A DNA stretch of 56,564 nucleotides from Octopus bimaculoides (GCF_001194135.2 NC_068983.1:95792323-95848886), one strand, 5' to 3'; shown: positions 6,394 to 15,846, counted from the stretch's first letter. The notes: generated by a model from the letters alone, not told the origin. Numbers and translations: made by a program.

Positions 6394-6482
6394 GCACACA
6401 CACACACACACACACACACACACACACACGCGTGCATGCACACATACATACATACATACATACATACATACATACATACATA
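6394..6482. repeat. (CA)n(CATA)n array
   Basis: Direct reading. Confidence 0.95.
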
Positions 6483-6483
6483 T

Positions 6484-9210
6484 ACGTGGTATCGCAGCTA
6501 GCGACATTCCAACAGATTCCGTAGTGCCTGCCAGCCAAGCTACATTACTGGCTCAAGTAACTGACCACTGTCCCGCTACTACGACTATGGTAAATAGCAG
6601 GCACAACCACACGATTATTGTAGTAGTAGTAGTAGTAGTAGTAGTAGTAGTAGTAGTAGTAGTAGTGGTAGTAGTAGTAGTAGTAGTAGTAGTAGTAGTA
6701 GTAGTAGTAGTAGTAGTAGGGATTATATACCGGTGAAATATACCGGTGCCGTTAGTGAAATTTTCCGAGAGAAAATAACTTTGCCTTTGAAGGACTCTCT
6801 CGAGGAGAGAGAATTCTCTACCAAAGTAAGTAAAAAAAAACAAAAAAACACCAGATACAGTATTAAAAGCTGTTAACAAAATTGGTGATGAGTATTTGCA
6901 ACAGTGCGATGAACCCGCATACTAGCAGATTAACGCCTGTCTATATGAGCTGGCTACTACTCTAAAACAGTACATGAATGATATTCAAAAATCAAACAAA
7001 ACCGAAATAACAAAGAAAGTACCATCATGGGTTTTGAAGACTGAGAAAAAGATAACTGGTTTTGCGGAAGACCATCAGCCCTGTAATGATGCTTATTGCA
7101 TGCAAACAAGCAAATCACTATACGTTCCACCAACAGAAAGTAAAGAAGGAGATAGAAATGATGTTTGGCGATAGCAAAAAAGAGGACACTCACTTATAAA
7201 CTGTTTACCCTCAAGCAGGAGCTAAAAGCTGTCAGTGAAAAACTCCGACATCAGAGGAGAATAACCGAGAGAAGAACAATAAACAAAAAATTTAAACGCA
7301 ACAAGACAGTGGTATAGAGAGACATGAGAAGAGGAGCAATAAATATCATGGAAGCTCCTTCACGAGAAGACATTGACTCCTTCTGAAGGAAAATCTGGAA
7401 AGTGGAGAAGGAATTTAAGCAAAATGCTCTATAGCTGGAAGAAATCCGAAAGGTTACTGCTCCTGCGTTACATCCAAGACATACAACATTGATGGTGAAA
7501 CTCATGCAACTGTGATCCAGAAATTCCAGGATGGAAAAGCACCTGGAAGAGACTTGGTTGTTGGATATTGATATAAGAAGCTAACATTCTACCGACCATA
7601 CCTTATCAATCTGTGCCAACAAGTTTTCATTGGGACCAATTGCAAAGACAAAATTGATCCCCAAATGCAGAACCACCGACATGGCAAAAAAACTACCGGC
7701 CAATTGCATGCCAGAACTTAATGTATAAGATATATACAGCATGTTTAAACCTCTTTCTCCAAGACCACTGTGAAACCAATAACATTATCACAGCAGAACA
7801 AGCAGCTGGGAAGAAAGGAGTCTGGGGATGTGCTGAGCAATTGCTAATCAACAAAACTATGATGTCAGAGGTGCGAGAGCAGAGGAGGAACCTAGATTCA
7901 ATGTGATTAGATTACGAGGAAGCCTTTGACTCTGTTCCCCACTCATGGATGCTAGAAACCCTTCAACTTGCTAAAGTTCCAGTGAGAATAGTCAAAGTCA
8001 TAGCTGGCCTGATTTCATTGTGGGCCACCATCTTGAAATTAAACACAAAGAGTGAATATATTATCACCGATAGAATACAGTATTGCAAAGGCATATTCCA
8101 AGGAGACAACCTCTCTGTGACGTTGTTTATACTTTCTGTAAATCCCTTGTCATTCATGTTAAGGAAGTCTGAAGGGTATCTCACTGGTTCACAAGGAAAC
8201 AGAAATATCAAAATTACACACTGTTTCTTTGTGGATGACTTAAAACTTTATGCAAAGAATATGCATGAGATAACAAAAGAGCCTTGTCCTAGTTACAACA
8301 TTCTCAAAGGATTTAGGGTTGGAGGTTGGTCAGGATAAATGTTGTTACATGGTTGTGAAAAGGGGGAAAACTATAAACCAGATCAGTAACATCTTTATTA
8401 ATGATTTTGATTATTTCCCCTGTATCTGACGAGGAATGTTATAGGTATTTAGGGGTGGATGAAAATATATCTTATAGTGTCACCTGTAACAAAACACGTG
8501 TTACTAAAGAATATTACAGCCGAATAAAGAGAATCTGGACCTCAGAACTCGCTGCATTCAATAAAACAGTGGCCCACAATATGTTTGCAGTGCCAGTACT
8601 CATACCAACATTTGGGCTGCTTGATTGGACGCTTAATGAGATCCGAGCCATTGATGTGAAAACCCGAAAAATACTAACAAGCATTCATAATTTCCATATT
8701 AACAGCGATATATACCGCCTCTACCTAAAACGAAAACAAGGCGGCAGAGGCTTGACATCGATCCAAAATGCCTTTGAGTGCCGCACTACATCCCTTCGGC
8801 AACACTTTTTAAGCACCAAGTGTCGAAATGCATCCCTTGACCAACTTTGCATACGTGAAACTGATAACATCATAAGACTTGGAAGGCAGCTCCTTGAGAA
8901 ACACTCTTTGTCTGATACCCTAGAATACATGCTCAAAAAAGTCGCACAACTCTACCACAACATATCATAAGATGAAAGGATGAGCTTATATGAGCAGAAG
9001 ACTATGCATGGATATATTAGTAGAAAGCTCCGTGATGATAGTAACATCGATCATCAAAACGGTTTATCATGGCCGAATAGCCAGATTATTACCTTCCACT
9101 TTGAAGGGCATGCGTTTACAATCCAGGAACAGGAAATATCAACCAAATACCTGATGCACAAAAGGGATAGAGATGCAGGTAAAGCCGTAAAGTGTGACAA
9201 CCATTGTATA
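6484..9210 (+). mobile_element. Decayed R4/Dong copy, CATA group (5' region through RT; breaks off at the zinc finger)
   Basis: Starts right after (CATA)n. Peptides: INACLYELAT, WKAPGRDLV, EQAAGKKGVWGCAEQLLINK, FDSVPHSWMLETL, GIFQGDNLSVTLFILSVNPLSF, HCFFVDDLKLYAK, YRYLGVDENISY, QEQEISTKYLMHKRDRDAGKAVKCDN. A (GTA)n array at 6620-6719 interrupts it. Confidence 0.85.
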
Positions 9211-9924
9211 TCATCAAAATTCATTCCCTGTTCACGGTTGTTCTTGTAGTTGTCTACAATAGAAACTGAAACTGAATATAAATGACAACGATATGATTCG
9301 TAGGTGACGTCATGGATGATGTAACTCCCTAGCTAAATTGATAATATTTATATTTAGCACCCCACAAAAAAAGACCACTCGACTCATTATTTTGATCATA
9401 AAATTATATCCAGACCATGACCACACACAACTGATTAACATAAGACCATAGTTAGAAAAAAAGACATAAGGCTGATTAGCATAACATCATACATAGATGT
9501 TCTCCAGCCTCAACTCCACGAGCATGCTGTCCCCTCATGATGCATATTCTATCGCTACTATAATGGTCTATGTTCATTGGAACCGATTGGCTTTGGTGTC
9601 TTAGAGGGTCTGTGAAGTTGACAGACTTGTAGTTTTCAAGCTTTTCATGTCCGAGACAGAGCCAAGACCTGGGTTTTTATGGGGAATGGGGCGCACCAAG
9701 AAATAAAAGGCAAGTCAATTAAAGAAACATATTTATAGAGGAAAAACTATCGAGGGTTGCATGCAGCCCTAGAAGCGTGGTTGAGGACTGATGGCAAAGA
9801 CGGTGCTCCTGCCTTCTTTCACATCGCGTGAATAAGTTTGTATGTATATACATATAGATATAGACAGATTTATCACTAGCCACTATACATTCTATTTTTT
9901 TCACTCCTTGTTTCTTTCTGTGTT

Positions 9925-13793: not shown

Positions 13794-14487
13794 CATACGC
13801 ATATACATACACACACACGCATACATACATTCAGACATACATACATACACACATACATACATACACACACATATATACATACATACATACCTACATACAT
13901 ATAAACATACATATACGCATATACATACATACATACATACATACATACATGGTGGTTGTCAATTTATAGACGAACATAACCCTTGCTGATAAATGATCTT
14001 ATCCTGGAGGTTAATGACAAATAGTTGTCAGCAATGCCCTGCCGACTCTTAAATCCGATAACATATTGTACAACATCGCTAAGACTCTAATTTCAAAAGC
14101 ATCTCCAAGTGAGATGTCTAAACAAAGACTTGGGGTCTCTCAGCCACATCTGTAGGATAGGCATTGATTCAATTGTGTTCATCCATCCTTTGACAGATTT
14201 TGTTTTCCGTCCTGCATGGTACCCAACCAAAAACATGCTCTTTGCAAGTAGGTTCGATAGGTTTGCTTGTTTAGTTCACCGACAGCTCGACCATGCGACA
14301 AGTTGTACTCAGTAGCACTAAGTATGACCTGACATGACATCCATCCATCCATCATCCATCCATCCATCCGCCCATCCATCCATCCATACATGCATACATG
14401 CATACATACATACAACAATACATACATACATACATACATACATACAAACATACATACTTACATACATACATACATACATACATAAAA

Positions 14488-15595
14488 GTTGCCTGTAATT
14501 ATTGGGGCACTGGGATATGTAACACACTGCCTGCGTACCAATCTTGAGAAATTAGGCTTCTCGAAACCAGAAAGGAGAAAGCTGATCCGAAAACTACAGA
14601 TCCAAGTCATCACTGGAACTGTAAAAATGTGTAAAACTTTCCAGAAGTTTATCATTTAAGTATATATGAGCATGTCTAGACATGCAGCTATATGCGTGGG
14701 AGTACATAGATAAAACAATGCATACAAATCTACATACATACATGTTGTTGGCACTCCGTCGCTTACGACGTCGAGGGTTCCAGTTGATCCGATCAACGGA
14801 ACAGTCTGCTCGTGAAATTAACGTGCAAGTGGCTGAGCACTCCACAGACACGTGTACCCTTAACGTAGTTCTCGGGGATATTCAGCGTGACACAGTGTGA
14901 CAAGGCTGACCCTTTGAATTGCAGGCACAGCAGAAACAAGAAGTAAGAGTGAGAGAAAGTTGTGGTGAAAGAGTACAGCAGGGTTCGCCACCATCTCCTG
15001 CCGGAGCCTCGTGGAGCTTCAGGTGTTTTCGCTCAATAAACACTCACAACGCCCGGTCTNNNNNNNNNNNNNNNNNNNNNNNNNNNNNNNNNNNNNNNNN
15101 NNNNNNNNNNNNNNNNNNNNNNNNNNNNNNNNNNNNNNNNNNNNNNNNNNNNNNNNNNNNNNNNNNNNNNNNNNNNNNNNNNNNNNNNNNNNNNNNNNNN
15201 NNNNNNNNNNNNNNNNNNNNNNNNNNNNNNNNNNNNNNNNNNNNNNNNNNNNNNNNNNNNNNNNNNNNNNNNNNNNNNNNNNNNNNNNNNNNNNNNNNNN
15301 NNNNNNNNNNNNNNNNNNNNNNNNNNNNNNNNNNNNNNNNNNNNNNNNNNNNNNNNNNNNNNNNNNNNNNNNNNNNNNNNNNNNNNNNNNNNNNNNNNNN
15401 NNNNNNNNNNNNNNNNNNNNNNNNNNNNNNNNNNNNNNNNNNNNNNNNNNNNNNNNATATATATATATATATATATATATATATATACATACCCAGTTGA
15501 TGTTGTTGAAATTCTAATGAAGGATCCTTGGATCGAGGTTAGAAACCGGCTCTTTCTCTGTTGGTATGAACTCTTGAAATAAAACTAAATAATGA
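14488..15595 (+). mobile_element. 3' R4/Dong fragment, CATA group, with a SINE nested in its 3'UTR
   Basis: LPVIIGALGYVTHCLRTNLEKLGFSKPERRKLIRKLQIQVITGTVKMCKTFQKFII* (stop 14657-14659); 3'UTR appears to resume at ~15487 (ccttggatcgaggttagaaaccggctc...aataaaactaaataatga); (CATA)n on both sides. Confidence 0.8.
14744..15058 (-). mobile_element. SINE family C body and tail (5' part lost in the N gap)
   Basis: Minus strand ends ...gttccgttgatcggatcaactggaaccctcgacgtcgtaagcgacggagtgccaacaac; non-coding; family link to the heads at 54773 and 44075 is from recall. Confidence 0.65.
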
Positions 15596-15846
15596 CATAC
15601 ATACATTATTGCATGCATACACTTATGCCAACGAACATAAGAAATCCCCCAAAGTGGAAATTATGAATCCTGAAATACGCTTGGGACAGAAAATGTTTTT
15701 AAACCACGTACAGCCATACAAGTCTTCTGCTTTGTAGTTGTGAATATTTCAGCCAGGCCAGATAGCAAAGGATATAAATGGAGAACTGCTTGGAAATCTA
15801 CAAATTCTTAACTCACATTATAAATTGATATTTATAACTACAATAA

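Follow-up and report, generated by a model that had tools for sequence, protein, structure and literature searches.

Dong-like retrotransposons in (ACAT)n microsatellites of Octopus bimaculoides and other genomes

Results

The stretch of DNA analyzed here, which we refer to as the window, comprises 56,564 nucleotides (nt) of the Octopus bimaculoides genome (GCF_001194135.2 NC_068983.1:95792323-95848886). Its region 6394-15606 is rich in microsatellites and contains decayed fragments of reverse transcriptase (RT) elements, which a first-pass annotation, made from the sequence alone, had read as three copies of an R4/Dong lineage targeting (CATA)n repeats. We found these fragments to be decayed, mostly 5'-truncated copies of a site-specific lineage of retrotransposons without long terminal repeats, which we named clade A. 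At least five copies are present in the window: C1, C2, C3a and C3b on the + strand and C4 on the minus strand. The first two annotated copies stood as C1 and C2, the third is probably two copies, as set out below, and C4 was added as a fifth.

C1 (6484-9210, + strand) is a decayed copy that keeps the RT and thumb regions. Its translated pieces lie in three frames, with frameshifts and many stops; when joined, they matched Pfam RVT_1 (E 2.5e-17) and also covered the thumb region. C1 is 5'-truncated and has no N-terminal domain, the restriction-like endonuclease (RLE) domain and the 3' untranslated region (3'UTR) are lost as well, and the copy terminates exactly within the CCHC motif (...HKRDRDAGKAVKCDNHC). 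Protein homology was first detectable at ~6821, and the 5' limit at 6484 is plausible only. Directly upstream of it lies an (ACAT)10 array (6442-6482, + strand), presumed to be a target remnant. A (GTA)33 microsatellite inside C1 (6620-6719) reads as poly-Ser in one frame; at this position relatives have a low-complexity region, which is Ser-rich in P0045 (...RSSSSMS...), and (GTA)33 may belong to the element as a coding repeat that has expanded, and not be an array in its own right.

C2 (12470-13793, + strand) is truncated at its 5' end and keeps the CCHC region, the C-terminus and the 3'UTR along with a decayed RLE domain. It lies between an (ATAC)n array directly upstream (12424-12466, + strand) and an imperfect (CATA)n array directly downstream (13794-13950, + strand), and its C-terminus, ...GTVKICKTFLKFQM before the stop codon, is followed by a 102-nt 3'UTR. 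In element coordinates C2 overlaps C1 through a common HKR....AGK...C.N stretch, by which the two copies had previously been linked and which we recovered with tblastn (48% identity over 23 amino acids, E 7e-4). Within its RLE region C2 is broken by ~330 nt of unrelated AT-rich sequence, roughly 13000-13330. By eye, the ends of this insert look like imperfect terminal inverted repeats, similar to those of miniature inverted-repeat transposable elements (MITEs); an inverted-repeat search on the insert did not confirm MITE-type terminal repeats.

The third annotated copy falls into two parts. C3a (14488-~14716, + strand) is strongly 5'-truncated and consists of the last 57 codons and a 57-nt 3'UTR, directly downstream of a (CATA)28 array (14373-14484, + strand). 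Its C-terminus is ...GTVKMCKTFQKFII, with the stop codon at 14657-14659, and its 3'UTR contains the palindrome GCATGTCTAGACATGC. A CATA-like stretch, CATACAAATCTACATACATACAT (14717-14743), follows the 3'UTR, and the distance from the stop through CATACAAATCTACATACATACAT is 84 nt. C3b (~15492-15595, + strand) is a 3'UTR fragment that aligns to the C2 3'UTR beginning immediately past the C2 stop codon and carries the conserved motif GAAACCGGCTC. It ends in ...AAATAATG followed by ACATACATACAT, where an (ACAT)3 remnant (15595-15606, + strand) marks the 3' junction. In order from C3a to C3b there are a foreign repeat (14744-15059), an assembly gap (15060-15456) and (AT)n. Each half includes sequence that directly follows a stop codon, so we read them as probably two copies; a single element whose 3'UTR was interrupted by 750 nt or more of foreign DNA is less likely, since it would not have such sequence twice. 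The foreign repeat is a 316-nt, GC-richer, repeat-like sequence located within the CATA-like stretch that follows C3a and extending into the gap; no second copy of it was found in the window. The gap begins ~400 nt past the C3a stop codon and is crossed by no reading frame, and none of our conclusions rests on continuity across it. No element spans the further gap at 11238-11247, which is part of an AT-rich microsatellite separating C1 from C2.

C4 (50256-50563, minus strand), identified with tblastn beyond the region first annotated, is 5'-truncated, with the C-terminus ...GAIKICKAFLQYM before its stop codon and a decayed 3'UTR. Read on the minus strand, it runs into an (ACAT)n array directly downstream (50145-50255).

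The window also holds six copies of (TAA)n-type Dong elements, which we named clade B. All are on the + strand in two tandem runs (774-5452 and 21624-23841), each copy being followed by (TAA)n. In the first run, T1 (~774-3725) is followed by (ATA)29, T2 (3814-4061) by (ATA)22, and T3 (4129-5394, with a gap at 4194-5129 inside) by (AAT)19; in the second, T4 (21624-22172), T5 (~22249-22777, with a gap at 22411-22614 inside) and T6 (22832-23830) are each followed by (AAT/TAA)n. The first three copies end in GT(A/T)H.LR..LS (GTAHTLRETLSI, GTTHVLRRALSL and GTAHILRKTLSI), as opposed to GTVKICKTFLKFQM and GTVKMCKTFQKFII in C2 and C3a, so the C-termini set the two groups apart as had been described. 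The two lineages occupy different microsatellites in the octopus genome.

Two further observations concern the (TAA)n arrays. The sizeable ones in the window are nearly all on the + strand (13 vs 1), and the largest, except that at 39553-39603, adjoin clade-B copies. The 5' side of T4 is (ACT)32 (21528-21623), not (TAA)n.

We next compared the flanks of the clade-A copies with the background of (ACAT)n in the window. There are 34 perfect (ACAT)≥3 arrays, 15 on the + strand and 19 on the - strand, covering 0.76% and 1.21%, respectively, of the non-N window. The chance that a random end lies near an array of the same orientation is 1.2% for a distance of 5 nt, 1.8% for 25 nt and 2.4% for 45 nt. 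Seven clade-A ends could be defined (5' of C1, C2 and C3a; 3' of C2, C3a, C3b and C4), and all seven have an (ACAT)n array of the same orientation no more than 45 nt away, at three of them no more than 5 nt away. This comparison of flanks with background CATA density, proposed in the first-pass annotation and run here within the window, therefore gave 7/7 ends against 2.4%. The 3' ends of C2 and C3b were set independently of the arrays, at 42-44 nt past the conserved 3'UTR motif (35-48 nt in relatives). Beside the other roughly 25 ACAT arrays of the window we found no further clade-A 3'UTR fragments or hairpins. Two statements of the annotation about these flanks can be separated: the intact 3' ends do run into (CATA)n, at 13794-13950 and 15595-15606, and arrays do stand upstream of C1, C2 and C3a, although that the copies start just downstream of them is unproven for the 5' end of C1.

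To examine the lineage in other genomes, we searched with the joined C1 protein and obtained 377 relatives (E ≤ 1e-10), the best matches listed being 35-56% identical to C1. Several intact relatives each stand for 170-390 near-identical sequences, which argues for recent high-copy activity. Relatives with complete C-termini end in G(T/S)(V/M)(K/R)(I/V)xK(T/S)(F/A), as do C2, C3a and C4. We took flanking DNA for twelve relatives and for ten further loci from a metagenome scan, which yielded 17 external clade-A loci with a resolved junction.

Eleven of these loci, with intact or near-intact elements, are flanked by (ACAT)n. The array is present on both sides in eight, five of which carry full-length copies. 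Upstream and downstream arrays are (TACA)22 and (ACAT)23 around a full-length element in L001, (ACAT)23 and (ATAC)167 in L005, (TACA)12 and (CATA)18 in L008, (CATA)12 and (ACAT)13 around a full-length element in L010, and (ACAT)7 and (ACAT)6 in L019. In L002 the element lies between (CATA)22.. and (CATA)58, after which the next element begins, and L003/L004 are tandem elements with (CATA)7 between them. L007, from the octopod Argonauta hians, has (ACAT)9.. upstream of a full-length element and a degenerate array, ACATACACAC..., downstream. In L017, L020 and L022, (ACAT)n stands at the 3' end, where the contig stops. Upstream arrays are not merely the tails of older copies, because in L001, L005 and L007 they are preceded by sequence other than clade-A 3'UTR.

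The remaining loci have other repeats. L006 (1888-8395) and L012 (3563-7899), from two different samples, have (CTTA)n on both sides, and L015 (4053-4080) has (CTTA)7 at its 3' end only, where the contig ends. The CTTA subclade comprises P0012, P0016, P0018, P0019 and P0084, with loci from three samples; L006 and the ACAT-type L001 are from the same sample assembly, in which recently active, high-copy members of both types were found. CA-rich or (CA)n sequence, on the 3' side only, is present at L011 (3015-3092), L013 (2916-2937) and L023 (3' end). These loci are of the P0021 and P0031 types, and their contigs stop short of the 5' flanks; CA-rich repeats may be a third target of clade A. A (TAA)n target was found at 0/17 external clade-A loci with a resolved junction and for 0/5 window copies, while L009, the control from clade B, lies between (TAA)n arrays. 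The register of the junction is constant, with CATA (or, in the subclade, CTTA) ending the upstream array and the same unit beginning the downstream array, and the two target units differ by one base. Clade A thus inserts into (ACAT)n/(CATA)n in fixed orientation and register, and a nested subclade inserts into (CTTA)n. The (CATA)n target proposed from the window copies is borne out by the 11 external loci bounded by (ACAT)n, none of which is in (TAA)n.

Two of the external loci show additional repeats. A sequence of roughly 60 nt, with (GATA)n before it, stands on either side of the full-length L001 element, upstream of its 5' array (1447-1505) and again downstream of its 3' array (5806-5868), and the element may sit in a larger duplicated or satellite-like unit. 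In L003, at 2200-2700, a 16-nt unit (GTCTATATTGTCTGRG) recurs about 30 times in tandem in the 3'UTR of a P0003-type element.

The 3'UTR motif GAAACCGGCTC, which the first-pass annotation had found to be shared by its two copies with a C-terminus and which lies at 13739-13753 and 15538-15552, forms the 3' half of a hairpin. This hairpin occurs throughout clade A, 35-50 nt ahead of the 3' junction. It consists of an outer stem of 3-4 base pairs (bp), an internal loop in which TT faces C, an inner stem of 6 bp and a TTGTT loop; in C2 (13724-13751, + strand) it reads GGCC-TT-GTCTCT-TTGTT-GGAAAC-C-GGCT, about 42 nt before the 3' junction. Inner stems differ by locus and complementarity is kept (ATCCCC/GGGGAT, GTTATC/GATAAC, ATTGCT/AGCGAT, GATCTC/GAGATC, GCCACC/GGTGGC, ATGTTC/GAACAT). 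Across ten sequences and ten pairs, 91% of cells were paired vs 61% in shuffles (0/500 shuffles reached 91%), and changes on both sides were seen in 10/10 hairpin pairs, slid controls giving 23-42%; the hairpin was first seen by eye in the same sequences, so both controls partly favor it by construction. The amount of compensatory change is large despite this, and by analogy with R2 the hairpin is likely an RT-binding element.

Members of clade A encode one open reading frame (ORF) with a predicted N-terminal three-helix domain, the RT, a CCHC knuckle, a PD-(D/E)xK restriction-like endonuclease and a short C-terminal tail, which is G(T/S)(V/M)(K/R)(I/V)xK(T/S)(F/A) in clade A vs GTAHILRK in clade B. 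A Pfam scan of relatives gave RVT_1 as the sole strong match (E 1e-24 to 5e-25) and a weak zf-RVT match over the CCHC region; it detected no apurinic/apyrimidinic endonuclease (APE) domain. In the C-terminal alignment of clade A, C40, C43, H52, C57, D126 and K157 are invariant and P125 nearly so, giving the motifs C..C...H....C and the RLE signature (R/K)PD ... (D/E) ... K. The CCHC region is kept in the window by C1 and C2. The solved structures nearest to clade A are R2 proteins (9nl3, 9dou, 8gh6; E down to 3e-28).

An N-terminal domain of about 70 residues is conserved in full-length members of both clades and is kept by no window copy. Its consensus is SYRRNRDYS..F.WTYELN.D.Y.CY...GYMKR.K..WDE.HPE in clade A and KWS.EDY..V..AFY...W.E...KL...RR.I.K in clade B. 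Comparing the two, as the first-pass annotation had suggested, we found them to be homologous (hhalign 87% probability, E 3.7e-6, 67 columns). The N-terminal domain of R4/Dong elements has been assigned as divergent Myb/SANT-like, without zinc fingers (PMC7998251); Pfam gave no Myb/SANT match in the N-termini of either clade. An AlphaFold2 model of the clade-A domain is a three-helix bundle with a predicted local distance difference test score (pLDDT) of 76, and its weak Foldseek matches include Sap1, TnsB and a homeodomain. In the alignment we saw no N-terminal residues that consistently separate ACAT from CTTA lineages. An Rfam scan of the window at gathering thresholds gave nothing; run permissively on four loci with 5' ends, Rfam returned no matches other than spurious ones to mir-297 on repeats.

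In a neighbor-joining RT tree (370 columns), rooted with an R2 fragment from the PDB alignment, C1 grouped with all ACAT, CTTA and CA relatives and with the Argonauta element as clade A (91% bootstrap), which supports the annotation's separation of its window group from the TAA copies. Clade B (59% bootstrap) contains T1 and the TAA relatives, including a protein of Pediculus humanus. Mean Kimura distances were 0.69 within each clade, 1.14 between A and B and about 2.0 to R2, and RT identity between the two clades is only about 30%. The CTTA subclade has a bootstrap value of 92.5%, and the position of C1 relative to it 50%. By RT sequence, clade A is the nearest relative, among the lineages compared, of the (TAA)n-specific Dong elements, and its apparent R4/Dong membership holds relative to R2 and the TAA clade only. 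When targets were placed on a tree of the C-terminal 235 residues (no bootstrap values), ACAT was basal, CTTA formed one nested group and the CA-rich types stood beside ACAT lineages. Judged from this topology, (ACAT)n would therefore most simply be the ancestral target of clade A, with a later switch to (CTTA)n and probably a further one to CA-rich repeats. The single switch to a 4-bp repeat that had been envisaged is thus supported as to the target, and the history appears broader, with ACAT looking ancestral and switches coming later.

Discussion

We propose that clade A targets (ACAT)n/(CATA)n microsatellites as Dong-like site-specific elements, and assign this reading a probability of roughly 85%. 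The steps by which it might do so (RNA binding, nicking, priming and annealing) are all drawn by analogy with R2 and Dong. The clade-A protein would bind its own RNA via the conserved 3'UTR hairpin, and the N-terminal domain together with the CCHC/RLE region would recognize the repeat duplex. The endonuclease would then nick one repeat strand, and the freed 3'-OH would prime reverse transcription. Repeat units at the 3' end of the RNA would probably anneal to the nicked array and so set the register. Incomplete reverse transcription could account for the 5' truncations, and repeated hits within one array for tandem copies with short arrays between them.

That the adjacency arises by chance, (CATA)n being so common that non-specific elements often neighbor it, is extremely improbable in our view. 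Most of the 34 perfect arrays in the window do lack a neighboring clade-A copy, as such a reading would have it, but 1.2-2.4% of ends would then be expected beside an array and 7/7 were observed, and every adjoining array is in the orientation of the element even though the arrays of the window are split between the strands. The same flanks recur at 11 loci from other genomes, with no (TAA)n or unique sequence at resolved junctions, and the clade-B copies of the same window are only in (TAA)n. The caveat of chance adjacency raised in the first-pass annotation is thus answered by both the window ends and the external loci. Less easily dismissed, though still quite improbable, is the proposal that the element itself makes (ACAT)n as a 3' tail, through RT slippage or from the RNA end as template, without any target specificity, so that upstream arrays are the tails of older copies. 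A 3' array alone cannot tell target from self-made tail, and the argument for targeting therefore rests on the 5' flanks. Tandem copies are many, and in L002, L003/L004, L008 and L012 the upstream array could belong to the preceding copy, while three loci have a 3' array only, with the contig ending there. The sequence that precedes the upstream (ACAT)n of L001, L005 and L007 is, on the other hand, not clade-A 3'UTR (the array of L010 starts its contig); 5'-truncated copies with differing truncation points also abut the array directly, and the register of the junction is constant. The same logic has been accepted for Dong and (TAA)n, and tail and target are not mutually exclusive.

Placement is less secure than targeting. 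That clade A is an undescribed, old and widespread sister lineage of Dong, ancestrally specific for (ACAT)n, with sublineages re-targeted by one base (CATA to CTTA) or by collapse to CA, is a possible reading, to which we give a little short of even odds. Targeting could also be real and clade A be a HERO or a separate RLE clade, in which case no target switch within Dong took place; this we consider unlikely, if well short of negligible. HERO is said to have microsatellite-specific families in the portion of PMC4640811 that cites a Repbase Report, the separation of clade A from the TAA clade is deep (distance 1.14), an HDV-like (hepatitis delta virus-like) ribozyme was not detected, and the tree was built without HERO, NeSL or CRE references. 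Clade A is nevertheless far nearer to the TAA clade than to R2 (1.14 vs 2.0), and both clades share the domain order, a VIGALG-type C-terminal region and a homologous version of the unusual N-terminal domain described for R4/Dong. The TAA clade moreover includes the Pediculus humanus protein, which we assume to be the same as the R4/Dong-like element of that species in Fig. 6 of PMC7998251. Several further points weigh against a Dong-like, (ACAT)n-specific clade A. (ACAT)n is abundant in the octopus genome, the copies in the window are old, C1 lacks its 3' end and its 5' limit is inferred, C3b has only three downstream repeat units, the C4 hairpin is decayed, and most external loci come from metagenome-derived assemblies. 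The RT tree also lacks R4 and Rex6 references, and the controls for the hairpin carry the bias described above. Foldseek of the N-terminal model against the PDB gave nothing significant (best E 3.6), leaving a Myb/SANT fold unconfirmed, and nicking, RNA binding and annealing are all inferred. An HDV-like self-cleaving ribozyme at the 5' end is a feature of R4/Dong elements (PMC3774820); the Rfam scan (E ≤ 1) of the four loci with 5' ends, whose 5'UTRs are AT-rich, did not find one, with models that often miss HDV-like ribozymes.

Among known elements, Dong itself (R4 clade; Bombyx mori, with Anopheles, Biomphalaria, ostracod and cnidarian relatives) is specific for (TAA)n and resembles clade A most. 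Both have a single ORF with RT, CCHC and PD-(D/E)xK endonuclease and a homologous N-terminal domain, insert into microsatellites in fixed orientation without a poly(A) tail, are frequently 5'-truncated and form tandem runs within arrays, and they are nearest neighbors in the RT tree. Unlike Dong, clade A is found in (ACAT)n, with one subclade in (CTTA)n and others probably in CA-rich repeats, and never in (TAA)n at the 17 external loci and among the five window copies. Its tail reads G(T/S)VKIxKTF where Dong has GTAHILRK, the acidic residue of its RLE lies in IIE in most members rather than LID, its 3'UTR hairpin is different, and no HDV-like ribozyme was detected in it. R4 of nematodes (28S ribosomal DNA, rDNA) and Rex6 of fish are members of Dong's wider family, with their domains arranged in the same order. 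R4 inserts site-specifically, into rDNA in contrast to the microsatellites of clade A, and Rex6 is assigned to the R4 family with no target given (PMC7599744); neither was in our RT tree. R2 (28S rDNA) offers the closest solved structures and is the model for the mechanism, from nicking by the RLE and binding of the 3'UTR RNA to target-primed reverse transcription; it differs from clade A in its N-terminal zinc fingers and Myb domain, its rDNA target and its RT distance (about 2.0 vs 1.14 between A and B).

Microsatellite targets are also known outside the R4 family. Waldo (R1 clade) is specific for ACAY microsatellites and Mino for (AC)n (PMC3812793), and both are APE-type. Clade A shares with them the kind of target, ACAY or AC repeats; it has a C-terminal restriction-like endonuclease and no APE domain, and is unrelated to them beyond the RT; since the same kind of target is used by unrelated elements, the choice is convergent. 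HERO families, compared here by description only, are RLE-type, and some insert into microsatellites according to the Repbase Report cited in PMC4640811, where Togen, near NeSL, is likewise stated to target (TG)n. Published targets of the R4 family are 28S rDNA (R4) and (TAA)n, and ACAY/AC targets are known only for the APE-type Waldo and Mino. Dong-R4 long interspersed nuclear elements (LINEs) are abundant and recently active in Octopus vulgaris, in reports that do not mention their targets (PMC13282606, PMC8967140). Our search of full-text literature, whose scope did not extend to Repbase Reports and Dfam, found no ACAT- or CTTA-targeting R4/Dong lineage.

If clade A is a re-targeted sister lineage of Dong, it offers a natural series of enzymes with different DNA specificities in which to study how RLE elements read their targets. 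Site-specific RLE retrotransposons are the best natural models of targeted, RNA-templated DNA insertion, and R2-type elements are under development for site-specific gene insertion; to our knowledge, DNA recognition by these retrotransposons is understood only for R2. Clade A has many intact members of uniform architecture, with targets one base apart in a 4-nt unit, beside a (TAA)n sister clade, and comparative and domain-swap tests of specificity are straightforward because of these intact members, their shared architecture and their near-identical targets. If different lineages each hold their own microsatellite, this would explain how several coexist without damage to genes. These elements would then also repeatedly split and seed tetranucleotide arrays, affecting microsatellite markers and assembly gaps. 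Cephalopod sequences annotated as "LINE/Dong-R4" would comprise two lineages or more, each with a target of its own.

Additional observations

A repeat of about 220 nt resembling a short interspersed nuclear element (SINE) is present in at least 11 copies in the window, on both strands, at 74-82% identity. One copy lies at 15839-16060; others are found, for example, at 248-582, 23857-25714, 28374-28535 and 34806-36205, the last including a 233-nt tandem pair (35744-36205). Just downstream of the T1-T3 run, 5818-5956 consists of 1.9 copies of a 73-nt unit (78% match).

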